From: Anthoceros angustus
Lineage: Eukaryota > Plantae > Anthocerotophyta
Length of the DNA stretch: 64,000 bases
Direction of reading: 5' to 3'
Assembly (NCBI GenBank): GCA_010909165.1
Contig: MU008197.1
Location: 248,001-312,000, forward strand
Made by a program: the position numbers and the translations under genes. The notes below the pieces were generated by a model. The model saw only the letters and a program-made list of their open reading frames with translations. It was not told where the DNA came from and did no database searches. Positions 1 through 56,600 of this stretch are shown one piece after another (position 1 is the first letter of the stretch; each line of letters opens with the position of its first letter).

Positions 1-1200
1 AAGCGTGGGGCGGATACGGAGCCGGCATTGCGGGATCAAATTTGATGATAAAGCCAATGCATGCGACCAATTGGAGAGTTTTCCGGGCATGCCTCCGGTG
101 CGGTGAAAAGGATTATCTTGTCTGCTGGAGAAAGTGATTCAAGGCGAGTTGACCGTGGCGGCATGAAAACGTGGATACGAAGGCCAAGAAGTTGAATGTC
201 ATCCAGAAGACATTTTGCTGGGTGAGGTGCAATTCATTTGCGAAGTTGAGAGAGAATATCCGAGGCACTCAACACGGAAGATATAGCGAAATTTCAACCG
301 GTGTTTGATCACATTGTGCAGTAATCCGACACGAGTTAGCAAGTGCGCAAACTAGTTTGCGCACTGTCTTCGTGTTCGACCTATGAACGTCTCCATCTGC
401 GGACCAAAAGCGGTGAAGAGTACAAGAGAAGATGATACCCGATAGCTTCAAAGAGCACATCAATGCGGCAAGAAATTGGAAGAGGGTGGAAGATTTTGCG
501 AGAGAGGCGAGAGGAAGACAACGGCAAACTAGACATTTTCCATGTTCGAAAAGCAAGCAAAGGTCCGTTACGGTGTAATGGTGATATTCGTGAAATGGCT
601 GCCTACTTGGGGAAAAGAGAATACAAGGCGTTGGTCGTCGATTTACCAAGGGGCAATTTATCGGAGACATGGGATAAGGAGATGACATGTGAGGATATGG
701 AGAAGATAATGGATGGATTCATGACAATCACCGAATGCAAGACTTTCCGTGATATTATGCATGGACGGACGGATGCGGGATGTCAAAATGCTACGAAAAT
801 GGTGTGAAAAGGGGGTTTATACAATGGTGCAGGAGAAAGACAATTTGGTCTCGGACGAGGACTTTCACGAGCTGAGTACATGACTGGGGTATGGTGTTCA
901 CCCCTCTGAAGATATGAGGAAGTGCGTGCATTGTCCAATAGTCGGTAGAGATTGGAGCAATGCTGCGTTTATTCGACATAAGCGATCGTGAAGAAACTTT
1001 TGAATGTGTCCAACGATGGCCATGTTGTTTCTCCTTACCAAAAGCCAATAGGGTTGATGGTTACGCTATGACCTATTCACGGAAAGGGGAATGGGTTATA
1101 GATGGATGCTCGGGAAGCGGAGTGGAATACTTGCGGCATTCTTTGGAAGGAGGAAGGCTGTTCTGTTGACCAAGAACAGAGGAGCACAATATTCATCGAG
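1..1200 (+). pseudogene. 3' part of a gene ending in a beta-class amino (N4C/N6A) DNA methyltransferase domain (PF01555-like); frameshifted, 5' end outside the window
   Basis: Joined across frameshifts: motif IV-like KALVVDLPRG...WD (DLPRG 640-654, WD 670-675), SPYQKPIGLMVTL (SPYQKP 1030-1047), then TYSRKGEWVIDGCSGSG (WVIDGCSGSG 1092-1121) and GILAA..GR/RKAV. This matches DLPYG..WD / P.QKP..L / S..GD.VLD.F.GSG in the IV-before-I order of beta-class MTases. Confidence 0.75.
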
Positions 1201-1685
1201 CAGTATTACGCCATGAAGTGTTTCCTACAGACGAGGAAGAGTTGACCACCAAACCACACAAAGCGTGGACATCCGGTTTTGCCAAAGAGATGGCGGCGGG
1301 GAGATCGATTAAGCCCGGGGCATAGCGCTACACTTGGTTCAAGGAACATGCGCACCCATCGACCTTCAAGACTTGAGTCAATCAGGGCCGGAAGAAGAAG
1401 GAGAAAGATGGCAAAAAGGTCCGGATAACCCTAAGAACAGAGGAGCACAATATTCATCGAATCAGACATGTGCCATGAAGTGTTTCATGCATTTGAGGAA
1501 GAGTTGACCACCAAACCACACAAACGTGACATCCGTTTTTGCCAAAGAGATGGCGGGGAGATGCCTGTGTGGCCGCAACGCTACACTTGGTTCAAGGAAC
1601 ATGCGCACCCATCGACCTTCAAGACTTGAGTCAATCGCAAGAAGAAGGAGAAAGATGGCAAAAAGGTCCATAACCCTAAGAACAT
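1172..1685 (+). repeat. Tandem duplication, about 260 bp x2
   Basis: AAGAACAGAGGAGCACAATATTCATCGA starts at 1172 and 1433; both copies end in ...AAAAAGGTCC..TAACCCTAAGAAC and differ by many small indels. Confidence 0.9.
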
Positions 1686-1750
1686 GTAAGGAAAGAAGAG
1701 CTAAGACCAAGAAAGCGACCTACTTGGGACAACCAACATCAGGAGGCGTT

Positions 1751-1950
1751 TGGGTTTGGCGAGTCCCAAGGTGGAGAAAGCCATATCTTCCTCTTGCTTT
1801 TACGATCCATAGCGGCTGCAGAGAGCGATGACATCGTCGTCCGAGACGCTTGGGTTTGGCGAGTCCCAAGGTGGAGAAACGCCATATCTTCCTCTTGCTA
1901 TTTACGATCCGCAACTACCGCAAGAGAACGATGACATCGTCGTCCCGAGG
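1751..1950 (+). repeat. Tandem duplication, 100 bp x2
   Basis: TGGGTTTGGCGAGTCCCAAGGTGGAGAAA at 1751 and 1851; both copies end in GATGACATCGTCGTCC. Confidence 0.9.
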
Positions 1951-2240
1951 AAAGACAACATTCGCCAAACTAGCTAGAAACATAGACCGATGTCAATTGT
2001 TGGGCTATTTAAATGTGAGTCGCACAAGTTTGTGCACAAATAGCATGGCGGTCACGAAGGAAAAAGCTGATCTGAATGTCTCTCGATGGTTTTCTCGTAA
2101 TTTCGATGCGAGAATGTCCCATATATTGTATCGCACCAAAATTGAAATGTTTGCGGGTGACATGTCATGGGAGAAATACAAAAAATGATTCGGTCGGATT
2201 TCCCTCGTGTGCGAAGGGTCCGGAAGCGTCCGTGTGTGCC

Positions 2241-2268
2241 AAAAGGGGTTTCAGGAGAAACCCCTTTT
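2241..2268. other. Perfect hairpin, 12-bp stem and 4-nt loop
   Basis: AAAAGGGGTTTC-AGGA-GAAACCCCTTTT. Confidence 0.9.
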
Positions 2269-2351
2269 AGAACAGACGCTGTTTTGTTCCTTTCCGCCTT
2301 ATTTTACACTCCATACCTACGAAAAAAAACAAACCCAGCTTATTTCCTAAC

Positions 2352-4148
2352 CGCAAGGAGAGTCCGTGGTCCACAGGGTCCGAGCTGGAGAATTGGTGAG
2401 GGCACTTAGACTTGGGTTCCTGGAAAAACGGTGGAGCTATGTGAACCCAAGTCTAGTGCAGGAGTGTGCTCGCCAGCTGAAGGCTGAGTCACAAGGGGAA
2501 GGAATCAGGGAAAGGCCGCAAGATTGGGATGTGGAGTTAGTTAGGAAGATCTATGGGCGTAGTGAGGTGGAGATAAATGGGAGGATTTACCAGACCAGCG
2601 ACGAGGAAGGAGGGCCCATGGATTCGGCAGGAGTGGACGGCGGGCCAGCACCAAATCGAGGAGGGTGGAGATAACGGTAGGGTAGTGGCATCCTAGGAAT
2701 AGAGCTGATGGGATTTGATAGATGCCATCCTCGACCCAAGGTCCAAAATTATAGGCGCTTCGTGTTCAAATTTTAGCTTTAGACCTCGAAATCACGGGCT
2801 ATGACGCCCCCAGTGATGAAATAGGTCTAGATTAGGGCACTATTCATTAGGGCCTCATAACTTAAACATTATTATCTACCTAGGGTTATTTAGGTAGTTA
2901 GTAGTTATATTAGTTATATTGGTTACAACAACTTACGGTTGCAACTACTTATGGTTGCAACCATTTATGGTTGCAACCATTTATGGTTGTAACCACCCAA
3001 CTACCCAGCCTATTTAAAGGCTTGTACTTTACTCATTAATTACTTACATTGTTTCTTCTTCTTCAATCTAAGAGCTGCATTCTCATCACCAAAGAATTGT
3101 ATAAAGGGGCCATGCCCCTCACATCGATAATTCCTGCTGAGATCCCCACGCCTGCCGGTGGGCTGGTTGGAGACCACTGATGACAAGAGGTAGTGTGTGC
3201 GAGACGCCCTAGGGTGGTCGGAGCTTGCTCGCAAACTGTGGGGAAGGGGGTGATAGAGCCCTACCGACAACGGAGGAGGAAATTGAGGGATTGCTGGGCG
3301 GAACTGAGCTTGCTGCAACGCCCGCCGGACGCCCGATAATTCTTCTTTCCTACCCTTCTTCCCGCTGGTTGTGTTCCAAAATTTAGAGTGTGTGGGTGTG
3401 TGGGTCAGTTTGGCTGAATCGAGAGAGAGAGAGGATTGGGTGAACCGAGAGAGAGGAAGAAAGAGCGGTGAAGGAGGGTCGAATAGCACTGGCGCGAGGT
3501 GTGAAGCCGTGAAGAGGAGTTGAGAAGGAGAACTAATTGAGAGACTAACAGTGGAGATTTGTGTGGATCAAAGAGAATCCAAACCGGTGCTGTCGGTGGA
3601 AGTGTGCACAAGGGAAAACACCATTCCTTTGTGGAAATTGTGTGGGTGTGGCGCCTTTGTGTGTGTGTGAAAGCGGTTGAGAGGGATCTGTGGAGCTTTG
3701 GTCCCTAGGAATCGGTGTGTACATGAAGTGTGGAGTGCAAAATAAAGTCTGATCTCGCGGAGCAGTGGTACGCCTGCAGAGATTCTGGCGCTGCAAGGCG
3801 CTAGAAATAAGTTGCTAGGATTTGGCGTGGGACCACTCTTGCGTTACACCAAACTACCCCAGAGTGGTGAGAGTCACCATGCAGTAGTAGCTTCCTGAAC
3901 CGGAGGTCGTGGAATAAGATTTGTGGTCGTGGGAATAAGATGTGTGCAGTTAGACAAGTGGGAGGTAGTAGTAGTTGAGTAGATAGGTTAGAGGAGTAAT
4001 AGCAAGTCCCGACTTAGGCGAAGGCCGTGAAGTGATAGAAGTTAGCGCCCTTGGCACAAACCATTCCCTTGGGAGCAATCCTAGGCCTACAATGACATTG
4101 AGGGTGAACGGGACCTCATGGTGTCTCTAGACACGTTCACACTCCACC
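2352..4148 (+). mobile_element. 5'-truncated gypsy LTR related to family B (42243-49439)
   Basis: Shares GTAGTGGCATCCTAGGAATAG, GCTATGACGCCC..AAAGAATTGTATAAAGGGG, the GA/GT tracts, GTCGTGG(G)AATAAGAT repeats and terminal ..TTCACACTCCAC with the B LTRs; no PBS follows. Confidence 0.85.
2814..3088. mobile_element. 275-bp solo-LTR-like insertion nested in the B-like LTR
   Basis: Absent from the B LTRs, where GACGCCCAAAGAATT is contiguous. TGATGA...TCATCA termini, AT-rich, TATTTAAAGG box, four 16-bp TTATGGTTGCAAC repeats at 2933, 2949, 2965 and 2981. TSD imperfect (CCCAG vs CCAAA). Confidence 0.7.
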
Positions 4149-4149
4149 T

Positions 4150-5500
4150 CTTCTAGTGCCGCCTGCCTCCGCCTCCATGCATGTTGTCTCGCCTCCTCAT
4201 CACAGCCCACATATGCGTTCCTCCTCCACGCCCGCCCACGCCCGCCCTCATCTCAAGCACCGGGCAGCCCTGAGCCTGCTTCAAAGAAACCACATCAGAC
4301 ACCTGGCTAGATGTGCAGAGTTTCCTCCTATCCCAACAACCACATACACATTTAGAGTGAGCACCGTCACCATGCAAGTGGTGGTTGTGTGACATGAGCA
4401 TCCTCATCCAGATGCCGCAAGACAATACGCCTTCTCGCTAAGGGTCCTTACCTTCCACCGTGGACAATCCGGACTGGCCGCCTGGAACTGAGAGTTGCAT
4501 CCTCCGCATGCTTCCCTGCCATTTTACCTCCCTTCCGCGACGGGTGGTTTAGCCACCGCATGTAGTTGCTTCCCCAACGGTGGTTGCTTCCGCCATCATG
4601 GTAGCCGCCGCCTCGCCTTCTTCTATTTGCCCGCCTTCTCTTGACCGGCCCTAGCCTCATCTCTCCCGCTTATATCTCTCCGCTAGTTTCTGAACTTCCA
4701 AGGGTGCCATCGTCTCCACCGTTTCTGACTCAAAACTTCATTCGAGCTCCTCAATCAGCATGCGCCTCCTTTTACTTGATTCACTAGGGCCTCCTGGTGG
4801 ACATGGCCTCACCGCCTCCTCTGCCTTGCTGCACTCCCCGCACTCGTCATGCGATCCTCCGCCGCTTTTTCTCTCGCCTCCAATCCCTCCAACTTTTCCC
4901 TTTGAGCATCTCTTGTTGCCCCGCAGACCACCAAGTGAGAGCCATACCGCCTGATCGAGAAGGTCCATCCGGGTTTGAGCCATGCGTCGAACGGGCAGAT
5001 TCTGCACCGTCTGCTCCATTCCTTCCACAATAAGCCTGTGACGCTGGCCGTGTCATTCGCCTCACTTCACTTGCCGGACAGCCAATGGATATCTAAAAAT
5101 GTCCTTGAGTCTCCTGAGCCTCTCAAATTAACCCTTCATCCCCTAGGGGTTGGTCTCGCAGCTTTCATTTGTAAAAACTCCCCAGCACTGCGATCTGCCC
5201 TCCAGACCAACAAGGGGACAACCCGCTTTTGCTTTCCTCCTTCGCCTGTGGCCCGCTGCCACGACCCGTGATCCGAGTAGGTGTGGTTGTGGGCCTCCTC
5301 CACCGCCACTGCTTCTCCTTTTGGCCGACCCCTGCTCACTGCCGCCGCCTCCTCTTCTTACTTTGTAACCTCTCCTCCTTCATCCGAATCCTCGGGTGAG
5401 GCGACCCCAACTGAATCCTTCCCCGAGTCCTCCTTAGACTCTCTCCTCTACCTTGAGTTCCCCGACCGGCTTTCCAACTATGAATACACCACCTCCAACC
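4150..5500 (-). pseudogene. Retrotransposon gag/protease-like remnant
   Basis: Charged gag-like stretch, degenerate zinc knuckle (..GREGHMRRDCNS-like, about 4490-4530) and a possible protease motif region (SSQVSDVVSLKQAQ); heavily frameshifted. Confidence 0.4.
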
Positions 5501-5519
5501 CGCTTTAAAGGCATTCGAA

Positions 5520-6760
5520 TACGCAAAACACATGAATCGTAAAGGGCGAGATCAAAGAGGGTGAGGGGGAGAGCAACGCCCTCTCTCTTCATAGGCCTCT
5601 CGAAAATCATCCTTCCCCAATAATCCGGGTGCCTTTAACCACTTCATGAAGAAAGACCAGAAGTGGTCCGCCATGTGATCCAATTTCCTGCCGCAAAACA
5701 TGTAATCCACTTGGCCAATCCCACGGTTTGTACACGAGTTGGCTGGGTCACCCATCCATTGTTAACCCTCACTTCCCTGTGCTTCATGAGTGCGTCACTG
5801 CAGCCTTAGTGGTCTTTCCTAATCACCACTGACTCCCATCCTCCGATTCCTCTCCATACACCGCCTGAAGAGCCCCAAGTCCCACTTAGGCTCTTCCTCA
5901 TGTCGCCTCTTATGACCACTGGTCCTCAATTACATGATTCCACACTAATGCTGAAATAATATAGCACCATTTCTTCTCCATGAAGCCCAACCTCAATTCC
6001 TCGTGACAAGGTCAGCCACTTAACCTTCCAGTGGTCCATATTGGGCCACCGTGCGTAGTGGGATCTCGCCGCGAGGCGCCATTTCTTCCTCCTCATTGCC
6101 ACGCTCAAACGCTTACGGCTCTACTCTCAAAACTCGCCTGGGCTGGGGAATTACCTCCTGCGATCCACCTGCCCGCCTCCGCCGGCTTCCCGCCTTGCCT
6201 CACCCCGCCAGACCGACGCTGACAGGCCGAGTCTTTCTCCTCCGCCACGCCTGGGCCCCGCCTGCCTCCGCCGCCATACCGCAGACCAGAAGGAAACCTG
6301 CTCCAAAGTGCCAGACGAAGCTGCTGCCACCAAGTCCTGCCCACCGCCACCTTGAAATTTTGCAGCCCACTCGGGTGGTGGTCTTTCCGCCTGCGCCCGA
6401 CTCTGCCCAACTTATCCTGCCCGGCCCGCCCTAGGTTAGCACCCCTCGCCCGACTGACGCCCACTGGCCACCGTGGTGGAGCTAGCCACCTCCCATCTCC
6501 GCCTAACCTGCTGTCGAATGTAGGTATTCCGCATATATAGACACTTTTTATTTCTAAAAATGCCAAGGTCCAAGGACTTTCTATCTGACCTAACATACCT
6601 AGGGTCGAAGCCCAAGGACCAATTATTAAAAATATTATTGCCATGGGCCAAGGACCACTGTCAGTATAAAAAGGCCTTACCCGGACGATTCCTAAGCATT
6701 CCGTTACACTAACAACAACAAAAAAACAAAAAATTCATTCAAACCGACAGTTCAGAGAAG
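5520..6760 (-). mobile_element. 5' portion of another gypsy LTR (family D) with accessory-ORF remnant
   Basis: Reverse complement of 6540-6750 resembles the B-LTR start (TTTTTTGTTTTTTTG, AATAATTGGTCCTT, CCTTGG..AAAGTGTCTATATATG); ORF 5552-5755 reads RKLDHMADHFWSFF, like the xDWA motif of the accessory protein. Confidence 0.55.
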
Positions 6761-6895
6761 GGTTAGTATGCATGTGGTCTCCCACAAGCGTGCCACCTAG
6801 TTGTTCGCCACAAGGGCTCCCTTCATCATGCATGTGTGAAGCACACTTTTTTCTTGAAGCTCAGGGGTAGAATTGGAAGTTGAAACAGATCCACT

Positions 6896-6910
6896 CACTA
6901 CTACAAAAAG
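6896..6910 (+). mobile_element. CACTA (En/Spm) 5' terminal inverted repeat
   Basis: CACTACTACAAAAAG, about 460 bp upstream of a TNP2 transposase; no matching 3' TIR seen in the window. Confidence 0.65.
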
Positions 6911-7356
6911 CCATGTTAAGACGCTTGCCTTAAGATCGCTCATTAGCACATGTTTCTACATCTTAAACTTAAGACTGAGGGAAACCAAAGATGCTCGAGA
7001 CGAACGCCAAAAGGCAAGAAAGACGGCCTCACCCCGCATCTTCATGTCATTTTGCACCATGAGCTCGATCACCATGGAATAATGGACGTGACTCACGCCA
7101 TACTTTTGTCCATTTCAAAGGCACTCATCCGCAGCAGTGCAGCACGAGGGGCCATGAGTTTTGGTGGGTGGCACGATATAATATCCGCTAACCAGATTTT
7201 GCCATGGTGTGTCAAACCCATCGCCCCCAATCCCGCCCGGAAGTGTGATCGCACTTGCCATGGTCGCCCGAGCACTTTTCACAACTTCAATGTATTGTCC
7301 TTGCCCGGATTAAGTAGGGAGGAACCACACACCGAGACATCTCTCACATGTCGTTA

Positions 7357-10300
7357 AGTGGCAAAGGCTTCAAGCAGAGGTGGAAATTGGCAAACCCCGC
7401 CTTTTGTTTTGTTGCGTATGCATCCGGATGTAGATCATTGGGGAGCCGCGAGCTAAGGGCATCTATTTTTATGTAGGCGATGGCCCTGGGCTTCCAGATC
7501 CAGTGATTGCTCAAGAGGTGCCCGTGCTCCGAGGAGTCACCGATGAGGCTCCTCCAGCAGCTCGATTCTGAGGCGGGGGGAGTGACAAGTGACAACGATT
7601 TTCCGACCAGATTTAACATGGAAGACGCGGGTGATAGTGGTCGGGCCCGCCTTACTCCTTTCCGCCACTGCTCCCAACTCAAGCATCACTTAGCCGAGTC
7701 TAACATCCCGCCTGGATTGCAAGCGCGCCAAATCGCAACAAAGCAGGCTCTCCGCCACCTTGGCTTTATTCTTCATCCAAGAGCGCCCGCATATCGACAC
7801 CGCCATACCGCAATCTTTGGTCTCGCTATCTCCACAATGCCGCCGACAATTGCTTACCGTCACTCACCAGAAGCTCCGCCGTGCCGCCAGCCTGCATCGC
7901 TTGTAGGATCGGCGCTCGTGAAGGATCGCATAATTTTTGGGGCGATTGCAAGCGGAACAACTCGCTCATGTAAGGAACCCTGCTATCGAGCTAGTGTGCT
8001 GAGCTACAATCCCGCAAGACCTCGTTCCACTTTCTAATCATTGAGCGCCTTGAGGCTTTTTGAAGTGAAATCGGCAAAGGAGTTGACCCGGTTTGCTTCA
8101 ATAAGAGCACCGATGGGAAATTCAGATTATGGTATACCCGGCCCGAAACGACTTGATGAAATTGATGGGTTTGAAGTAGAGGATAGAAACATCCGACTTG
8201 GGATTTGCACAGATGGTATCAATCCCTCCGGCCACCGCTCATCGGCTTATTCCATTTGGCCGCTTTATTGATCTTGCATAACCTGCGCCATGGATTGCTA
8301 CCAAGAGGCACAAAGGCTTCGCGCAGAGGTGGAAATTGGCAAACCTTGCCCCTTTTGTTTTGTTGCAGATGCATCTGGATGTAGATCATTGGGGAGTCAT
8401 GAGCTAAGGGCATCTATTTTTATGTAGGCTGTATGGCTCGGGCTTCCAGATCTAGTGATTGCCCGAAGAGGTGCCCGTGCTCTTCTGAGGAGTCAGCCTG
8501 ATGAGGCTCCCTCCAGCAGTTCTGATTCGGAGGCAGTGGGGGTGAGTGACAGTGACAACGCATTTTCTGACCAGGATTTTGCGAACATGGAAGACGCGGG
8601 TGGTCGTGGCCCGCCTTACCTCCTTTCCGCCATCGCTCCCAACTCAAGCATCACCAGTCGAGTCTAACATCCCGCCTGGATTGCAAGCGCCAAATCGCAA
8701 CAAAGTAGGCTCTCACGCCACCTTGGCTTTATTCTTCATCCAAGAGCGCTTCCGCATATCAGACACTGCCATATCTGCAATCTTTGGTCTGCTATCCTCC
8801 ACAATGCTGCCCCCGGACAATTGCTTACCGTCGACTCACCAGAAGCACGCCGTGGCCGCGTAGCCTGGATGCATCGCTTGTAGGATCGATGCTCGTGAAG
8901 GATCGCAATTTTTAAAGGATTGCAAGCGGAACAACCTGCCTTTCATGTAAGGAACCCCGTTACCGAGCTAGTGTGGCCGGAGCTACAATCCCGCGCAAGA
9001 CCCTGTTCCACTTTCCAATCATTGAGCGCCTTGAGGCTTTTTGAAGTAAATCGGCAAAGGAGTTGACTGGTTTGCTTGAATAAGAGCACCGATGGGAAAT
9101 TCGTGATTATGGCGATACCCACAAAACGACTTGATGAAATTGATGGGTTTGAAGAGAGGATAGAAACATCCGACTTGGGATTTGCATGATGGTATCAATC
9201 CCTCCGGTCACCGTTCATTACAATTCCATTTGGCCGCTTTATTGATCTTGCATAACCTCCGCCATGGATTGCTACCAAGAGGCGGTTGCTTATGCCTATC
9301 ATTGTGCCCGGCCCAAGTAGCGTAATATGGACGCTTATTTAGAACCCTTTGCAAGAACTAGCGCTCTTGTGGAAAGGCGTGCCTATTGTGGACCACTCTA
9401 AACCATTGGGGACCCAACACGCACTTCACCGCTGGATTTTTGAATGCTACCTGTGATTACCCTGGACTTGGGAGCCTATTCGGTTTACAAGTACGCGAGT
9501 ATGGATGCTGTGTAGACTGTGGGCATGGCCTGCAACCAAGATGGTCACATGCATTGGAAAAGTTAATCTGCGATGGAAACAAGAGGTGGGCCACCTCTAT
9601 GCGTGATCCTCGACGCCGAGAAGACCGAGAATTTTTCAATAATGAAATTGAGGATGTGGTCATCGCCCCACCAAGGCAAGACATTGTATGTAGATGAACA
9701 GTGGGCAAATGCTAGCCGATGAGCGGGCAAATGTTCAAGCATGGAGAGTGAAGCTTAAATCTAGGTTCATTGATCATTTGCCATACATGACACAGCCCAC
9801 AAAATGTGGCTCAAAGATGTAATGTATGTTGAAGTGAATAATTGCTGTATTTTGGAAGCTTTTACGGGAAAGGGAGATACTCGGAAAAGCAAGTAGACTT
9901 GGAAGATGCGATTCAAGCCATGGCTATAGCTAGTTCAAGACAATGATTTAGGCACACTTGCCCCATGCAAGTTACACTTTGCACAGGGCAGATCTAGAAG
10001 CCGTGAAACAGGAGATCTGTCGCATAAAGCCACCTACAGGTATGGGATCAATTTGGGAACGTGTTTTAAGGGTGCCAAAGTCACTGGACTCAAGAGTCAT
10101 GATTGGCATTTATTGATGCATATTTCCTACCCATAGCCCTTCAAGGATATTTAGGCGGTCCTGAATACAAGGCTTTCATAGGCCTAAGCTCACTTTATCG
10201 ATGGTTGTGTCAAAAGGCAATCAAGGTCAGCGACATACCATCAATGAAGACAAAGGTGGTTGACATCATGATCAAATTAGAGAAGTATTATCCGAGTACC

Positions 10301-10385
10301 ATATGGAATCCAATGCAACATTTAATCATGCACTTGGTGGATGAGGTTGAAACTCATGGGCCAGTATATAGTAGGTGGATGTATA
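7357..10385 (+). pseudogene. tnp2: CACTA TNP2-like transposase (transposase-associated domain, Transposase_21, DUF4218), frameshifted
   Basis: RNIRLGICTDGINP, YSIWPL, ATCDYPGLGSL, CVDCG and MQHLIMHLVDEVETHGPVYSRWMY are characteristic TNP2-family motifs. Confidence 0.92.
7358..9280 (+). repeat. About 950-bp tandem duplication of the 5' part of tnp2
   Basis: AAAGGCTTC..GCAGAGGTGGAAATTGGCAAACC at about 7365 and 8310; both copies end in CATGGATTGCTACCAAGAGGC. Confidence 0.9.
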
Positions 10386-10438
10386 TCATCACCAGTAAGT
10401 TACCCATCCACCCTTCCAGTGGAACATTATTGCATGCA

Positions 10439-10975
10439 AAGTCGCATTGTGCCACCAGGTAGAACCAATATGCAGGAAAAGTGGCCTTGGGCATGTGAAG
10501 TGGAAGAGTACATGAGTAAATGACTGTGGTGCAACGACATGTGGCGAGTGGACCAATTGCAGTAAGTGGCATTGTGCACACAGTGGAACAAATGTGAAAA
10601 ATGACATTGGGCACAGTGAAGTGGAAGATGCACGAGTAAATGACGAGGGTGCAACGCACATGTGGCAGTGGACGGTGCAGGCAAAGTGGCATTGTGCACC
10701 ACAGGTGGAACAAATGTGCGGAAAATGACATTGGGCACGAAGTGGAAGATGACAGCAAATGGCAGTTACAGCGCATGTGGCAGAGTGGACGAGTGCGAGC
10801 AAAGTGGCATTGTGTGCAGGTGGAACAAATGTGCAGGAAAATGACATTGGGCACGGGAAGTGGAAGATGACACAAAGCAATGATCGGTGCAACGCACATG
10901 TGGCAGTGGACGAGTGCGGTGGCCTTGTACACCAGGTGGAACAAGCTGAGATAAAGCGACATTGGGCACCAAGCG
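10439..10975. repeat. Minisatellite, about 120-bp unit x4.5
   Basis: AAGTGGCATTGTG..CAGGTGGAACAAATGTG..AAAATGACATTGGGCAC..AAGTGGAAGA recurs at about 10439, 10564, 10683, 10802 and 10920. Confidence 0.9.
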
Positions 10976-21910: not shown

Positions 21911-24900
21911 ATGGAAAATGGCTGGAGTTTTGAACCGGACACGTGGCCCATCGTGAGGAGCGCCATTAAGGCAGACGGTATGTACCGCAAACTCGTTAGC
22001 TGTGGTTTTGAACGGGCGCCTTCAGCGAACCCGCAGTCGGGCGCGCCGGAGGCGGAGTGCGTCAAGAAGGAAGGCAAAGAAGGAGCGGCGCTTCACCGAT
22101 TGCAAGCAGCCGGAGGAGCGCGAACTCAAGGCGCCGAGGAGCAGCGAGGCGACCTGAGCGGAGCTAGCCGGGGCATGAGCGATTGGCCGGAAAGGAGTTC
22201 GAGGGGATCCGCAAGGCGAGTGGAGGTGCTCGAGCGGAGGCGATTGTGTAGAGGCGCCGAGGGGTGAGCTTGGCTACTGACGCCAAAAGGCGAGCAAGGT
22301 GGAGAAGTTGCTGGAGGGAGATTGAAGGGGCCAAGGCCACCTCTTAGTGGTTGCGTTGAGGCCGACTGCCGAGGAGCGGAAGAACTCCCCTTGCTGCCTC
22401 ACCCAAACCACCACCTCTTTGCTCTCCACTCTCTTAGCCCGATAGATTACTCCAATCTCTCCAATTTTGCTATCCTTGTGTGTGCTCCCTGCGGATGGTA
22501 AAGATAGTGAGGACGGGAACGGGGTACTCCCACGGGAGGAAACCTCCGCCACACCGCCCACAAGGGAAAAGGTAAGAAACACCCACCCCGAGTTCGAGTG
22601 TAGGCCGCCCAAATTTCACCCCGAGATTTGAGGCGTCGAGGCCACGCCCGAGATGAAGATGGAATGGTCAGATTTTGCACTGGTGGCACTTTGCAGCCCC
22701 GCCTTGGTTCAGAGTGTGCGCGATTTAATGAGAGTGACCAAGGCGACGGCCTGGAGGATGCGATCAAGTCATCCCGGGATGTGGAAGGTACGGCATTTCC
22801 GTGGATACGATTTGATACCGGAAGCCCACAAGGGAGGGATCATTCGCAGCCTCCTCCAAGAATCGATCCCGAGGAGGTTATGAGCATGTTCCTACGACCA
22901 AAGGAGGAAGTATGGTCGCAAGGCAATGGCTGGAGGATCTCTTTGTTCAAGGAGCGGAAGTGGAATTTATTCGCCAAGATATGGCTGGGACTAACGCGCG
23001 AGGAAGACGACTGGAAATTCCCATTTAATGATGATGTATGAGATGTCCTGTGGGAAGTTGGTGGATTGGGCCACCATTCTCGTATGAACAAAGTTGCGCA
23101 TCAAACCATTTGGTGATGGAGGGAGCAAGAATCGCTTTGTCTCTACCTTCCTCGACACCTATATCGAGGGAGGAGGTTCTACCGACGAAGAAGCCAAGAT
23201 AGAAGCTACCGTGAGGGTAGCGGAAGGAGAGCCATCACGGCCCCAGAGGATGAAGAGAGAGAGGCCCCGGGCAAGAGACCGCCACGCCCGAACCAACATG
23301 AGGCCTCGTGATCGTGAACCCAACAAGAGAAAGGGAAGAAGGCCATAGAAGCACCTCCTACGAGGAAGGAGGAAAGGATACGAGACCACCTACCGAGGGT
23401 TGAGGATTGGAAGGCCGACAACACCAAGGGGAGTGAACCCCTACCAGGACCTGTGGAGGATGGAGGACCTACGGTAGGAGCTTTACCTCCTACCAAGAAG
23501 TAGTAACAAGACTTGAGGCAGTGGAAGAACGAGGGTTGGTGACCCACGCACCAAGGAGGAGGAGGAAGTGTTCGAACAAACGGGCATCCTGCAGGGTAGT
23601 TGCCGAGTCAAGGAAGTGGGCGCAGGATCTATGGACGCCCTAGTGGACCGTGTCGGAGGTGACCAAGTTCGGAACTTCGAGACCTACGAAAGGAGCCGGA
23701 GGATGCCGAGAAGAAATTGAGAGGAGCTCAAAACCACCTCCGAGAAGCAACACTGCTAGATCCGCCAAAGAGCGACAGATGACCACCAAGTTGGTGAATG
23801 TGTGGGAAATGATTGACTGTCTTAGGACAGAGGCAAAATCAGCCAAGAGGGAGGAGTTGGAAGCCAGAAGGAGGCGTATGAAAGTTGGAAGCTACCCTAG
23901 CAAGGGTAGGACACATCGAACGCAGCAAGGAGGAGGCAAGATCTAGCTAGCAAGGCCCCGGACCTTGAAGACGAGAAGGACCTCCACGAAGAAGTTAGTT
24001 GCCATGGAGCAACGGAAGGAGCATTACAAGGGAAAATACGCTTGGTGAAGGAACGACAAGGATGGGACAATGTGACCAAGGGTCACAAAGAGGAGCTTCA
24101 GACACGAGAGAACTTTTGGAGCAAAGAACGAAGAAGGCCGACGACCTTACCCACGCCTATGAAACGGAGGCAAGGAACGGAAGGAAGTTTTGATGGCCCA
24201 ACGATCTTTGGAGGGTCTTCGTGTCATTCGAGGAGCAGCGAGAGATCACGCTATAGTGAAACGCATGGCGATGGAAGCCATGGAGAAAGATAAGGAGATT
24301 GGGAGGCTTGCCCGAGTTGGAGAGAGCGGTAGTGGAGAAAGAGGCCGCATTGGTAGGAGTGACAAATCAGCCGGTGGGACGAAAAGGCCATCCCACTAAG
24401 GGTCCGCATCATGGACGACAAAAGAAGGAGAGTGGTAGGGTGGCGACCTACTACAACAACCTCCTCGGAAGCGATTGAGGAACGCCAGCTGAGGAAGACG
24501 AAGAAATGACCTCACCGCTCGACGCCAAGTGGAATGGCACCGGAGGTCAAACTTTGAGTTGGTACAAGGAAAGCCAGTCGCCGGACATAGCCGAGCGAGC
24601 GAGTCAAGAAGCACCTACGGCGACGCCAGAGAACCTCCCGAGACGGTGGAGCTATCAAGCGGGAGGAAGAGACCGATGGTAGGATGGTACTACCAAAGTT
24701 CCTACTGTAGGAACTGCTGAAGAGGAGGAGGTGACCGGGAAGGGTACCTCCGGCCTACGAAACCTGTGCCGTGAGGGAAGGTACCCCATAGCAAGGTCTG
24801 AAACAGAGGTAGGAGATGAACCGCCTACCAAGAAGACGAGAACATGAGGGGAGGAACCCATCGAGGATGAACGAGTAGGAGGAATGGAACCTCCTACCAC

Positions 24901-33260: not shown

Positions 33261-36200
33261 TGTGGAACGAAGAATTTTGGTCACCCAAGACGCGCAGGAG
33301 AGACGACGCCAAGGATGAATAGTGGGTTCGTGTGTAGGTAGTAGGTAGGTCGATAGAAATGTAGGAAGATGGTAGGACGTCCGAGGGAGTTCGGACTTAA
33401 TCGAATCTGAGAGGAGGTTCGATCGGTAGAAAGTATGGGTAGATAGAAGCATATATAGGCATGATAGGTTCCAAAGTTCCTTGGACCATGGGGAGTAGGA
33501 ATATTCGGGATAGAAGTTCCTTGGCCTTCAATTATTTAGGTTCCGATGGGCTATATATGCCAAAAGGGCTAGTTAAGTTGTAGATGGAAAATAGCTACAG
33601 GAGTTTTGAACCGACACGTGGCGCCATCGTGAGGAGCTTAAGGCATTTGCATGTACCGCAAACTCGTTAGCTGTGGTTTTGAACGGGCGCCAGCGAACCC
33701 GCAGTCAAGGGCGCCGAGGGTAAGTGAGCTGGGAAGGAAGGCAAGGGAGCGAAGTCACGCAGGCAGCGAGGGAGCGAACTCAAGGCGCCGAGGAGCAGGC
33801 GCCATCGAGCGAGCTAGCCGGGGCATGAGCGATTGGAAAGGAGTTCGAGGGGATCCGCAAGGCGCGCGAGTGGAGGTGCTCGAGCGGAGGCGATTGTGAG
33901 AGGCGCCGAGGTGAGAAGGCTACCGACGTCAGAAGCAAGGTGGAGAAGGCCGGAGGGGAGATTGAAGGGGCCAAGGCCACCTCTTAGTGGTTGCGTTGAG
34001 GCCGACTGCCGAGGAGCGCGGAAGCTCCCCTTGTCATGCCTCACCCAAACCACCACCTCTTTGCTCTCCACTCTCTTAGCCCGATAGATTACTCTCCAAT
34101 CTCCAATTTTGCTATCCTTGTGTGTGCTCGCGTGATGGTAAAGATAGTGAGGACGGGAACGGGGTACTCCCACGGGAGGAAACCTCCGCCGCCACACCGC
34201 CCACAAAGGGAAAAGGTAAGAAACACCCACCCCGAGTTCGAGTGTAGGCCGCCCAAATTTCACCTCGAGATTTGAGGCGCTCGAGCGCCGCCCGAGATGA
34301 AGATGGAATGGCTGTACTTGGTACCGGGTGGCACTTTGCAGCCCCGCCTTGGTTCTGGAGTGTGCGACGAATGAGAGTGACCAAGGCGACGGCCAATTCC
34401 GAGGATGCGACTCAAGTCATCCCGGGATGTGGAAGGTACGGCATTTCAGGATACGATTTGATACCGGAAGCCCACAAGGGAGGGATCATTCCGCAGCTCA
34501 GCCTCCAAGAATCGATCCCGAGGAGGTTATGAGTATGTTCCTACGACCAAAGGAGGAAGTATGGTCGCAAGGCAATGGCTGGAGGATCTCTTTGTTCAAG
34601 GAGCGGAAGTGGAATTTATTCGCCAAGATATGGCTGACTAACGTGCCAAGGAGGAAGACGACTGGAAATTCCCATTTAATGATGATGTATGAGATGTCCT
34701 GTGGAAGTTGGTGGATTGGGCCACCATTCTCAGATGAACAAAGCGGTTGCGCACAAACCATTTGGTGATGGAGGGAGCAAGAATCGCTTTGTCTCTACCT
34801 CGACACCTATATCGAGGGAGGAGGTTCTTACACCGACGAGCTGGAAGAAGCCAAGATAGAAGCTACTGTGAGGGGTGGAAGGAGAGCCAGGCCCTGAGGA
34901 TGAAGAGACGTGACAGGCCCCGGGCAAGAGACCGCCACGCCCGCGAACCAACATGAGGCCTCGGATCGTGAACCCAACAAGAGAAAGGGAAGAAGGCTAT
35001 AGAAGCACCTCCTACGGAGGAAGGAGGAAAGGATACGAGACCACCTACCGAGGGTTGAGGATTGGAAGGCCGACAACACCAAGGGAGTGAACCTCTACGG
35101 TAGGGACCTGTGGAGGAGGAGGACCCACGGGAGCTTTACCTCCCACCAAGAAGTAGTAACAAGACTTGAGGTGTGACGAGAAGAACGCCGAGGAACGCTG
35201 GTGACCCACGCACCAACAGGAGGAGCAGAGAAGTGTTCGAGAACCCGCATCCCATGAGGGTAGTGAGAAGGAAGTGGGCGCAGGATCTATGGACGCCCTA
35301 GTGGACCGTGTCGTGGAGGTGACAAGTTCGTGGCCGAACTCGAGACTCACGAAGGAGCCGGAGGATGCCGAGAAGAAATTGAGAGGAGCTCAAAACCACC
35401 TCCGAGAAGCAACACTCCGTACAACCGCCAAAGAGCGACAGATGACCACCAAGTTGGTGGAATGTGTGGAGGAAATGATTGACCAAAGCTTAGGACGAGG
35501 CAAAATCCCCAAGAGGGTCGAAGGAGTTGAAGGCTGCAGATGGCGAAAGGGTCACAAAGAGGAGACTCACGAAGGGGCGACTTTGCAGCCTCACAGAGAA
35601 CGGAGGCAAGGAACCGCCAAGGAGGTTTTGATGGCCCAACGATCTTTGGAGGGTCTTCGTGTCATTCGAGGGAGCAAAGTAGAGCGATCACGCCATAGTG
35701 AAACGCATGGCGATGGAAGCCATGGAGAAAGATAAGGAGATTGGGAGGCTTGCCCGGAGTTGGAGAGAGCTAGTGGAGAAAGAGGCCGCATTGGTAGGAG
35801 TGACAAATCAGCCGGTGGGACGAAAAGGCCATCCCACTAAGGGTCCGCATCATGGACGACAAAAGAAGGAGAGTGGTAGGGTGGCGACCTACTACAACAA
35901 CCTCCTAGAAGCGATTGAGGAACGCCATGCTGAGGAAGACGAAACAGACCTCACCGCTCGACGCCCGTGGAATGGCAACCGAGGTCAAACTTTGAGTTGG
36001 TACAAGGAAAGCCAGGGCCGGACATAGCCGAGCGAGCGAGTCAAGAAGCACCTACGGCGACGCCAGAACCTCCCGAGACGGTGGAGCTATCAAGCGGGAG
36101 GAAGAGACCGATGGTAGGATGGTTTACCAAAGTTCCTACTGTAGGAACTGCTGAAGAGGAGGAGGTGACCTGAAGGAAGGGTACCTCCGGTTCACGAAAC

Positions 36201-52725: not shown

Positions 52726-53679
52726 GCTTGGGTTGTGTGTCTTGTGCTCACTTTTTGTATCCAAAGCTCACTTGTCCATCCATGATCAAATAATTAAATA
52801 CCAAATGCAAAATCATATCCTTAAGATCCGAGCATTTTATCGTGGACTTGTTGCCATGCTCTTAGTTTTGGGAAAAAACTTGAATCACTTGATCATTATT
52901 CTAGCGAGGAGAGTTTTTGAAGGTAAATATGTCCACATGTGGACATATTTCCACGTTCGTCCGTCTCACATAATGTGGTCTACCTAACCGCGTGCTTGGA
53001 CCCATTATTGAAAACCACGCGCTGAAGGTTGGTTTGCCCACCCCTCCTGTAGCCTACCTCCCGAGATACATGCATGTCTATGAGATATGTGGTTCTAGTA
53101 TGTGATTGTGGCTAGTACCCAAAGTTTGTGTTTGTTAGAGATCATGTGAAACGCGCGTCATCCCACAACCATGTCCTTCTTATGTCGCACAAAGTTTTAG
53201 CATGACATATAAGATGGGTGAGAGATAGAATAGTCTATCTATGCGGATTTTCACGAACTCTGCTTATTTTCCTCAAGATCGCTTTCCTACTCATAGCGAT
53301 GCTGATGATTCAATGTATCACGACTCCCATATCCAATCGGCACACCTCATTTTCGGGCTTTCTGGGGGAGAGCTCGACTTGGAAGGAGAAGCATAATGAC
53401 CCTACTGCATATTCAAAGAAACAAGCTTCTCATCCAACAAGTGGCTTGAACATGTTGTTTAACGGTGATGGTATGCGGCGCTTTCGGCGGCGGCCAGCGG
53501 TAAACGCACAATCCCGTGTCGTTGTAGTAAAGTCCCAGTTCCAAAGGGAATGATAAACTCCGTTTGCACACGCCGCGTTCTGTCGTTTCTCACCTCACGC
53601 AGTTGTCATGAGCTTAGACTCAACACATTCCTTCCGTTTCCATGACTAACTACCCGTAACGCGTTCACCACGAGCATGT

Positions 53680-56600
53680 GCCCGGCAGGCTAATAGCCCA
53701 GCGTTTAAGAGACCCGTTAGCGGTCAGTATCATTCAAGTTAAGTCACTTTCCGTTCCTCTAGTCCGTTCCTCTCATCATTCTCACTCCACACTCGCCTTC
53801 GTCCTTGGAAAAAGCGGGTGGCGTATGGTCCGGATTACTCCTCGAAATCGCTCTGCCGATGCCTCTCTCCGGGCCTCCGGGTGCTCTACACGCCTCACGG
53901 GAGTTCCTCCATTATGGTTCCCGCTGGTCCGAATCATCCAGGCGCAAATATTTGGGCAGCTGCTCGGAGACGAGCAAGGGTCCCAGTCGCTCTTCACGCA
54001 CACACCACCACACGTTAGGGTCCGTCACAGGCTACCAGTCAGTCCTTGATCCCGGTCTCTCCCGGGTATGCGTGCACCTTTCGGTGACTCGGGACTCACT
54101 TAGTAAGAAGACGACAAGGTCTGCAGGCGGAAAACGCGATCAACACCAAGAGAAGATACTTTACTAGAGCACCCTCTTATACTACGCCTAAGTCGGCGTC
54201 TTTATTACACTCTCAATCACCGGTGGCGTGCTCAAGATGCCCTAATCGGCCGCTTACCATCTTATCCCTTCCTCCTATCTCCGCTGCCTATGGTGGGCCC
54301 GGGATGACCTTGGTTCCGCCTCGGGCGTGGCCCACCCCGCTCGGCTGGCCATGGGCGCACTTAATCGATGATCCGGCGGGCGGACCTTCCTTCGAACTCG
54401 TCAGTTGTTACCGGGCGGCTCCGACAACCGCACCACCACATCTTCCTCTCTTGGCCCCGAGTGGGTCCCCGGTAGGGGCCACCGATTGATCGCTTCCTCA
54501 AGTTGAGGGAGGCTCCCCTTCACCTTTCCCGAGTCCCGACCTCGGGGTCGTTCGACCGAGTCCGAACTTCGTGGTTCGAGTTCCTTATTCCCGGCCCTCC
54601 GGTCCGTCTCATTCGGGTTCGGACCTCGTGGTCCGAACTTATTGTGTGGTCCGGTCTCATCTCTAGGTTCGGACCTCGGGGTCCGAACTTATTACGAGTC
54701 CGGTCCTCAAGTCCGGACCCCTCATCCACTGGACCGCCATCGTTAGCCCATCCTCACCCACCGACCCTTGTCTTGGGTCGTTGGTGTTCCTTCCTCGCCT
54801 CGGGCCCCCATCTCTATCCCTCCCGACAAAGTTGCGGCCGGGCTTACCCCGAGGTTCGCTGTGGCATTGGCCGCCCCCGCCTCCCGGGCTCTTCTCCACC
54901 GCACGCTGCCGTCTCCCAAACAAGGCCACCAAGGCCCCCGTCAGGCCCCCATGTCCTTCTTCCCTTCCACTCCCTCCGAGCCTCCTGAGGTCCGTCCTGC
55001 CAGAAGCGCGCAGAGGCTTCCAACGCCTTGAGGAGCTCAACGCGTGGTAGTAAGCAAAATCCGAGTAAATTTGTCGATTGCCTCTTCCACATGCGCCCGG
55101 AGCACATACCCTTCGCCATAGGTGCTCAAGAATGCGTGCTTTGCGGACCATCTCCTGCCAGTTTGATGTACCGAGCGAGAATCTCTGTGGCCACAAGGGA
55201 AGCCTGCTACTTCCTCGCATCGCTGGCTGCTGCCCGGCTCCAGCCCTGCTGCTTCCGGCTCATTGCCGCCATAACGCGCCTCCTCCGCCTTCCTTAATCG
55301 ACGTGACTTTTTTACTGCCCAAGGCTCGCCCCATTCATCCCGGCCTCAAGCTTCCGCCATCTCCCTCTCCAGACGGTCCGAATCGCCCATTGCGGTTTCG
55401 TCTGTGTCCTTCTCCATTTCGGCGACGTGCCTTGTTCCATCGCGCACCTTCGCCAATGTGTAGCTTGAGTCGCTCTATCTCGCCGTGATCCGCGATCATG
55501 CGCGCGATTCTCCTGAATTGCCCTTGGGCTGCGCCAAGGTCTCTGCGGTCTTCCATCTCCCCGCCGCTATTGCCCACCTCACGCAACTGGCGCCTCGAGA
55601 TCCTCCATCTCCTTGTTCCGGCCTCCTTCTCCTCTCGTGTGGCCGGCTGCACTGCCCACGCCTGCCTGGCCCGTTGGCAGCGGCTATCCCTGCCTCCACC
55701 TCTCCACGCTGTGATCCTGGCCGGCCTTAGCCAGCCTCCCAGCCTTCCACTCGAGCCTCAGGCCAGGTTGGTCCGGCCAAGCCGCCTCCAGTCGCGAGCC
55801 CTCCGCTTGCTTGGGCCTCGGCCTGCTACCCTCCATGCAGAGGTCCGCCCGTGCTTGGGCCTCTCAAGACGGCTGGTGACAACAAGGACCTTGGTCGATC
55901 TGTCGGATAGGACTGACCTCCGCCTCGCTTCTCGCGCTCCTCCTCGATTCGAGGGACTCCGCTCATTCTTCGCCTGGCCGCCCCACTGCTGAAGTTCCAC
56001 CATCCTCCTCACTGTTGCCTCTCCACTTCTGGGTCTTCTACTGCCGCCAAAGACCTCTCTAAAGCATGTCACCATGACGGTGGCCAAAACCTCCGCTGCT
56101 TCCACGGGCCTGGGAGATGCCAGAAGTCCTGTGGGCGCGGCATCTCTGGTCCGCTCGACCGCCATATGCAGATCCGGAGCGAGTCCGGACTTCTCGGGAC
56201 TAATCGGACCCTCGTGTCCACGAGTGTTGTGGTCCGAGACCTCAGCCTTGGCCCTCTTGGCGCTAACTCCTTCTCCGCCTTCTTCTGGGCTCGAGGCAGG
56301 ATGGGGTCCGGAGTCGGCCCTCTTGCCTCGCCGGCCGGGCTGGGACGGCTGTGGTGGGGTGTCAGCCATCCCTGCCCCTAGGCGTCCTCTCCGCCTCCTC
56401 ACGGGCCTCCTCCGCCACTCCGCCCAGAGGCAAGGGCAGTGCGGTCCCGGGTGCCCCTGCTGGTAGGCGCTATCCCGCCGCCTCTTGTTCCCCGAGTCCC
56501 TGGCTCGGTATGCTGTTGTTGGCTGGCGGCCGAGTCAACCGCCAACCGCTGGTCTCCTCCTCCTGCCGGCTACCCGGGGCACCAAGAGGAGGGAAGTGAT

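Follow-up and report, generated by a model that had tools for sequence, protein, structure and literature searches.

The left end of a 64,000-nucleotide (nt) stretch of DNA from Anthoceros angustus (GenBank assembly GCA_010909165.1, contig MU008197.1, positions 248,001 to 312,000; this whole stretch is called the window) carries what is quite probably the decayed remains of a beta-class (PF01555-type) DNA amino-methyltransferase gene, a pseudogene fragment located at nt 542-1264 of the + strand within a multi-copy eukaryotic repeat. The domain is present end to end, in the correct order and at about the correct length. Descent from a beta-class amino-methyltransferase gene is the most likely origin of this relic, as suggested by a collinear match to a PF01555 profile and by an ESM-Atlas feature search with its motif I piece. 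Features on which the working of a PF01555 enzyme depends (the QKP block, the loop GSG for S-adenosylmethionine (SAM) and the order of the blocks) can still be partly recognized. The original prediction, made from the sequence of the window, had described an intron-free coding stretch for a bacterial-type methyltransferase, borne on a mobile element and possibly able to write N4-methylcytosine (4mC) or N6-methyladenine (6mA).

Motifs and reading frames of the relic

Direct translation of the left edge gave a motif IV-like block, a QKP block and motif I, in this order along the + strand. Frame 1 reads KALVVDLPRGNLSETWDKEM (fuller stretch, NGDIREMAAYLGKREYKALVVDLPRGNLSETWDKEMTCEDMEKIMDGF), in which VVDLPR occupies nt 634-651. 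The same frame reads VVSPYQKPIGLMVTL at nt 1024-1068 (HVVSPYQKPIGLMVTL when taken from nt 1021), directly followed by a TGA stop at 1069-1071, and frame 3 reads YSRKGEWVIDGCSGSG at nt 1074-1121. The motifs named in the original prediction (DLPRG, QKP and motif I, with IV preceding I) are thus borne out, having been read directly in that order. DLPR and QKP are separated by about 128 codons and QKP and GSG by about 26 codons, a spacing that fits that of a small beta-class domain. The P-x-QKP block (PYQKPIGLMVTL) is followed, across a -1 frame change, by a hydrophobic-D-x-x-x-G-S-G block (TYSRKGEWVIDGCSGSG) at the expected distance of ∼20-25 residues. In the six-frame translation of the 64 kb, P.QKP and D..GSG each occur a single time, both on one and the same strand and 70 nt from each other. 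A tblastx comparison of nt 1-1300 with the remainder of the 64 kb and a motif regex detected no second copy of the relic within the window.

The reading frame is destroyed. Rather than a single uninterrupted open reading frame, nt 542-1264 use three frames, interrupted by several in-frame stops and by no fewer than five frame changes, and the longest stop-free piece in the relic region is 123 codons (436-804). Left of nt 436, stops occur throughout all three frames. The proposed intron-free coding stretch running past the left edge is therefore refuted, since the motifs are spread over different frames and no frame that reaches this edge exceeds 44 codons. At the catalytic tetrapeptide position the relic has D-L-P-R (nt 640-651) where a beta-class enzyme is expected to have (D/N/S)PP(Y/F/W); compared with the PF01555 pattern, both the first proline and the aromatic residue are substituted. 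Given the DLPR substitution and the destroyed frame, this copy is presumably inactive today and would be unable to bind SAM and flip a base. The suggestion that the locus writes 4mC or 6mA fails on the same grounds, the frame changes and stops being joined by DLPR in place of DPPY or SPPY.

Frameshift-aware alignment to a PF01555 profile

A PF01555 profile of 257 columns was built from 15 aligned enzymes (Escherichia coli yhdJ and 14 phage beta-class enzymes); the four of these that were checked gave Pfam PF01555 matches at 1e-44 to 1e-64. DNA was aligned to this profile by dynamic programming with frame changes allowed, using stricter and milder penalty settings. The resulting features, with coordinates in the window, are as follows.

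542-1264 (+): whole probable PF01555-type domain relic; collinear path over profile columns 1-248 of 257 under milder penalties
577-741 (+), frame 1: N block, NGDIREMAAYLGKREYKALVVDLPRGNLSETWDKEM; profile 10-63, with VVDLPR (634-651) aligned to 'vtdpPY'
816-860 (+), frame 3: middle block, W-x-K-like, FIQWCRRKTIWSRTR; profile 91-105 ('neiiWeknn')
1033-1068 (+), frame 1: QKP block, PYQKPIGLMVTL; profile 181-192 ('ptqkPvaLlerl'); an in-frame TGA (1069-1071) and a -1 frame change come next
1071-1121 (+), frame 3: motif I (putative SAM-binding) block, TYSRKGEWVIDGCSGSG; profile 195-211 ('assnegdvVLDpfmGSG')
1124-1153 (+), frame 2: tentative post-motif-I remnant, GILAAFFGRR, aligned to 'gvaaiklgRk'
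1192-1221 (+), frame 1: tentative post-motif-I remnant, FIEQYYAMKC, aligned to 'fI..eeyfdial'

The permuted arrangement, with motif IV N-terminal to motif I, is evident from the collinear positions of the N block and the motif I block on the + strand. Under the stricter penalties the N block scored 20.2 bits versus a shuffle null of 12.5 ± 1.6 bits, a score reached by 0/1000 shuffles and 0/311 genomic segments. The C block (nt 1033-1121, profile 181-211, with one -1 shift after 1068) scored 25.7 bits versus 13.5 ± 1.9, which was reached by 1/1000 shuffles and 0/311 segments. When the N and C blocks were scored as an ordered pair, 45.9 bits were obtained versus 24.5 ± 2.5, and neither the 1000 shuffles nor the 311 genomic segments contained an equal. 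The middle block gave 15.4 bits for nt 822-863 (stricter penalties) and 13.3 bits for 816-860 inside the full path; it is weak when taken alone and would count solely through its collinearity with the other blocks. The two post-motif-I remnants chain only under relaxed penalties and can be assigned only tentatively.

The full path, 241 codons for 248 profile columns, scored 50.3 bits. Dinucleotide shuffles gave 20.6 ± 3.6 bits (maximum 42.5; 0/5000 reaching the observed score), and other segments of the window, taken on both strands, gave 19.5 ± 4.4 bits (maximum 37.0; 0/276). The control alignments remained at the null level, with 24.0 bits for the reversed profile, 14.6 bits for the reversed sequence and 20.1 bits for the reverse complement. 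An exponential tail fit yielded P ∼1e-5 per 900 nt, or ∼1e-3 after correction for the segments of the window; these statistics are convincing at the scale of one window and are no proof at the scale of a genome-wide trawl. A frameshift-aware PF01555 search had been put forward with the original prediction as a check on it, and the outcome was divided: the purpose-built profile gave the match described above, whereas Pfam's own model was silent on the pieces.

Two other searches point to parts of the same domain. When hmmsearch was run with all filters off (--max), the top match in frame 1 was NGD...VVDLPR (profile 10-62) and that in frame 3 was MTYSRKGEWVIDGCSGSG (profile 194-211; domain P = 0.004 with Z = 1). 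In an ESM-Atlas feature search with the 34-residue motif I piece, PF01555 was found in 80 of the 100 nearest clusters (score 0.77), a result that we regard as a lead rather than a test; the same search with the whole 123-residue piece returned nothing.

Copy number, contamination and expression

We compared nt 1-6000 with the Logan contigs of three sequencing runs, namely a DNA run (X1), a run from another organism (X2) and a small RNA run from the same sample (X3). In X1, 316 contigs matched, mostly 85-99% alike, and the summed word depth was 120-290 over nt 1-1000, ∼3 over 1001-1200 and 17-35 over 1201-1800. Nucleotides 1-1000 are part of a diverged multi-copy family; the X1 depth shows a repeat without saying which element it is, and such diverged multi-copy coverage argues against a single-copy host gene. 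A high-depth X1 contig spanning 580-749 differed from the window by three substitutions and by a 1-nt deletion at 650, which creates an extra frameshift. In a check of the same positions, the D-L-P codons of that contig were without any listed change, so DLPR is probably not private to the copy in the window; this is the one point about the locus that is possibly worth keeping.

X2 contributed one 154-nt contig, which spans only the QKP-GSG block (986-1132), and X3 gave no small RNA coverage of nt 1-2200. Prokaryotic contamination and a chimeric join had been named beforehand as outcomes that would overturn the identification. Both are excluded by the broken frame, by the contiguous plant repeats adjoining the relic and by the diverged multi-copy coverage in an independent DNA run.

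Alternative explanations

Several results weigh against a methyltransferase relic. One rival reading is a chance resemblance, in which ordinary decayed repeat DNA of no methyltransferase ancestry would show, by accident of its three-frame translation, a D.P-like block and a QKP...GSG pair arranged as in the beta class. We consider such a coincidence unlikely. The standard searches recognized none of the pieces. Pfam gave no match (E ≤ 10) on six stop-free pieces or on the 57-residue C block with its parts joined by X, so that none of the relic pieces reached the PF01555 gathering threshold of 26.7 bits, and a PDB sequence search with the C block returned only noise. A phmmer search of the 123-residue piece against 1.84 billion representative proteins gave two matches, both spurious (proteins of Ig-like and SprB repeats); these were repeat-inflated artefacts and were dropped after a Pfam check. 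Word-index protein searches with the 123-residue piece and the C block yielded no candidate sharing three words, under a length filter that barred full-length relatives. An exact-product look-up of a 114-residue open reading frame found no record, and a metagenome scan produced 113 pattern matches, of which 0 were confirmed. To a protein language model, the N block (565-741, GKREYKALVVDLPRGNLSE) resembles the N-termini of alpha/beta-hydrolases ('..DlrGhGrS' region; 0.90, 158 shared features); taken alone, this block is ambiguous and easily misread. We kept the hydrolase identity as a caveat and did not adopt it as an alternative because no other part of a hydrolase is present. As for the statistics, single blocks reach only ∼P = 1e-3 versus shuffles, the null distributions have heavy tails (shuffle maxima of 40-42 bits), at the P value of the full path chance alone would yield a few matches per gigabase, and the site was chosen for these very motifs from a very large scan, which introduces a selection bias.

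What argues against chance is the combination of four to six blocks that are collinear over the whole profile with the right spacing, an arrangement matched by none of the shuffles or window segments and by none of the reversed controls. The ESM-Atlas search, an independent method, assigns the motif I piece to PF01555, and the run from another organism keeps just the QKP-GSG block. As a point of method, relics of this kind escape Pfam, PDB and phmmer searches and are recovered by frameshift-aware profile alignment judged against empirical nulls.

If the methyltransferase ancestry is accepted, the relic could be a pseudogene of a host, non-transposon methyltransferase or of a bacterial or phage gene acquired on a single occasion, comparable to Marchantia DN4MT1 or bdelloid N4CMT; this origin is very unlikely in our estimation. 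Domesticated PF01555 genes do exist in eukaryotes, and within the window no ParB domain, transposase or terminal repeat is linked to the relic. Pfam detected no ParB domain in ten pieces upstream of the relic, and a ParB profile from ten phage ParBs, aligned to nt 1-560 in the frameshift-aware manner, scored 17.0 bits versus a null of 18.8 ± 3.3; such a domain may be situated to the left of the window or have decayed too far for detection. A search of phages with a ParB protein as query yielded no ParB-methyltransferase fusion that might serve as a bridge. Across nt 1-8000, neither an open reading frame resembling a transposase nor matching inverted repeats were found, and hence neither a Sola1 DDE transposase nor terminal inverted repeats around the relic. 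Any carrier element would lie mostly to the left of the window. The many diverged, high-depth X1 contigs over nt 1-1000 speak against a host or one-off gene and indicate a repeat family, dispersed in multiple copies as is expected of transposon cargo. The original claim that the methyltransferase was borne on a mobile element therefore holds in part, since the multi-copy repeat makes a mobile origin plausible, whereas the window has yielded no ParB, transposase or element end.

A live gene whose frame only appears broken (by introns, programmed frameshifts or assembly errors), or a prokaryotic contaminant, is barely conceivable. The length of the domain is complete, and long-read assemblies often carry homopolymer indels; however, every one of the frame changes and the stops would have to be an error, DLPR lacks the aromatic residue of the catalytic motif, the high-depth contig of the independent run adds another frameshift, and small RNA coverage of nt 1-2200 is nil. 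We rejected introns as the cause of the frame changes because the gaps between blocks, from a few to ∼75 nt, are far too short and because the total length already equals that of the uninterrupted domain. The diverged multi-copy coverage and the contiguous plant repeats exclude a contaminant.

Comparison with known systems

A decayed beta-class methyltransferase gene in a multi-copy repeat, the reading that we prefer, would have its source in a cargo gene of a DNA transposon family akin to the Ectocarpus Sola1 element, with a protein combining ParB-like and N4C/N6A methyltransferase domains, and the copy in the window may have been amplified or scattered within a dead, non-autonomous derivative of that transposon. 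We infer this descent from the repeat status of the locus together with the literature on cargo methyltransferases. In Ectocarpus, the giant transposon Sola1-1_Ec32 has an accessory gene for a ParB-like plus N4C/N6A methyltransferase protein, which is proposed to bind and mark its own element (Dinatale et al. 2025, PMC12477816); as cited in that paper, transposon-borne ParB-methyltransferase genes were described in green and red algae in 2011. By description, Sola1-1_Ec32 and the relic share a prokaryote-type amino-methyltransferase domain within eukaryotic repeat DNA. They differ in that the relic consists of a broken methyltransferase domain only, with no ParB, transposase or inverted ends found, that its host, a plant, carries CACTA elements, and that its catalytic position reads DLPR.

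Bacterial and phage PF01555 enzymes such as E. coli YhdJ share with the relic the block order GD...D-x-P-x, W-x-K, P-x-QKP and D-x-x-x-GSG, the spacing and the overall length. Unlike these enzymes, the relic gives no Pfam match, has no DPPY or SPPY and has a broken frame, and the likeness is seen only by frameshift-aware alignment.

Among eukaryotes, PF01555 enzymes are rare and are known as bdelloid N4CMT (PMC8885841) and Marchantia DN4MT1 (bioRxiv 10.1101/2021.02.12.428880). The 4mC in sperm of Marchantia polymorpha is written by DN4MT1a/b, an intact pair of host genes with high expression (Walker et al., bioRxiv 10.1101/2021.02.12.428880). Compared by description, DN4MT1 and the relic are alike in being of the beta-class, prokaryote-type amino-methyltransferase kind in a plant nuclear genome, but the relic locus is dead and multi-copy. 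The N4CMT of bdelloid rotifers likewise has a permuted PF01555 domain in a eukaryote; it is an intact, intron-containing, single-copy (allelic) gene whose product also has a fused chromodomain, and no transposon carries it (Rodriguez et al. 2022, PMC8885841), whereas the relic is broken and lies in a repeat. In Bostrychia, the Plavaka genes PAG2 (N6-adenine methylase plus SET) and PAG3 (ParB plus 2-oxoglutarate (2OG) oxygenase) lie beside inverted-repeat arrays (bioRxiv 10.1101/2025.02.11.637652). The resemblance here is to DNA-modifying cargo of giant DNA transposons with inverted-repeat arrays nearby, but Plavaka belongs to another transposon superfamily and has other domain combinations, and the relic has a lone 24-nt palindrome in its vicinity. 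In the literature that we searched, such methyltransferase cargo of transposons is not described for land plants.

The locus is presumably one further, particularly poor, dead copy of a known kind of cargo gene, and taken by itself it matters little, being a dead fragment unable to methylate DNA. At the level of the family, others have raised the question of whether eukaryotic DNA transposons use prokaryote-type amino-methyltransferases, often fused to ParB, for self-marking. This question includes whether the practice extends to land plants and whether such cargo was a source of domesticated enzymes like Marchantia DN4MT1. It is quite unlikely, though worth stating, that DLPR is the ancestral state of a land-plant family of transposon cargo, whose intact members would be silent DNA binders or readers, or else methyltransferases with an unprecedented catalytic loop, and whose putative binding site would be the 24-nt palindrome; if so, the relic would be a fossil of that cargo system in a land plant.

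Surroundings of the relic

The features that lie next to the relic are as follows.

342-365: perfect 24-nt palindrome, AGTGCGCAAACTAGTTTGCGCACT; within the multi-copy stretch, just 5' of the probable methyltransferase domain
1172-1684 (+): tandem duplication with 2 copies of a 253-nt unit, ∼85% alike, overlapping the relic at its 3' end
1743-1941: second tandem duplication, of a 100-nt unit, 2 copies, ∼85% alike; adjoins the first
2028-2037: degenerate half-site of the 24-nt palindrome with one mismatch, GTGCACAAAC; ∼1.7 kb downstream

Because the first duplication overlaps the 3' end of the relic, it shows that rearrangement took place after the gene had decayed. The 24-nt palindrome is listed because papers describe inverted-repeat arrays beside ParB-type cargo genes; it could be a putative protein-binding site of the element or a mere hairpin. 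A strong hairpin, AAAAGGGGTTTC-AGGA-GAAACCCCTTTT, with a 12-bp stem, is located at 2241-2268, between the duplications downstream of the relic and the next repeat.

The CACTA-type end CACTACTACAAAAA starts at 6896 and is oriented rightward, toward an open reading frame at 10103-10462 (+) that Pfam assigns to DUF4218 (E = 1e-13); it thus faces away from the relic, as had been predicted. DUF4218 is a domain of plant CACTA/En-Spm transposase-associated proteins, and this frame and the CACTA end mark the surroundings as transposon DNA of a plant.

Other repeats and palindromes of the window were noted in passing. A 16-nt unit with a palindrome in it, TGGTTGCAACCACTTA, forms an array of 4.8 copies at 2920-2996, and a TATA-like TATTTAAAGG directly follows. 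The repeat around this array is very high copy (summed depth ∼530 in X1, with some RNA contigs), and the array resembles the promoter or enhancer region of a different element, such as a long terminal repeat. A perfect 26-nt palindrome, AAATATGTCCACATGTGGACATATTT, lies at 52925-52950. Two near-identical 22-nt hairpins, GTTCGGACC-TCGT or TCGG-GGTCCGAAC, occur at 54617-54638 and 54667-54688, at a distance of 50 nt, where the G+C content is 61%. An identical 19-nt palindrome, AGTTCCTACTGTAGGAACT, is present at both 24697-24715 and 36131-36149, the two copies being 11.4 kb apart.

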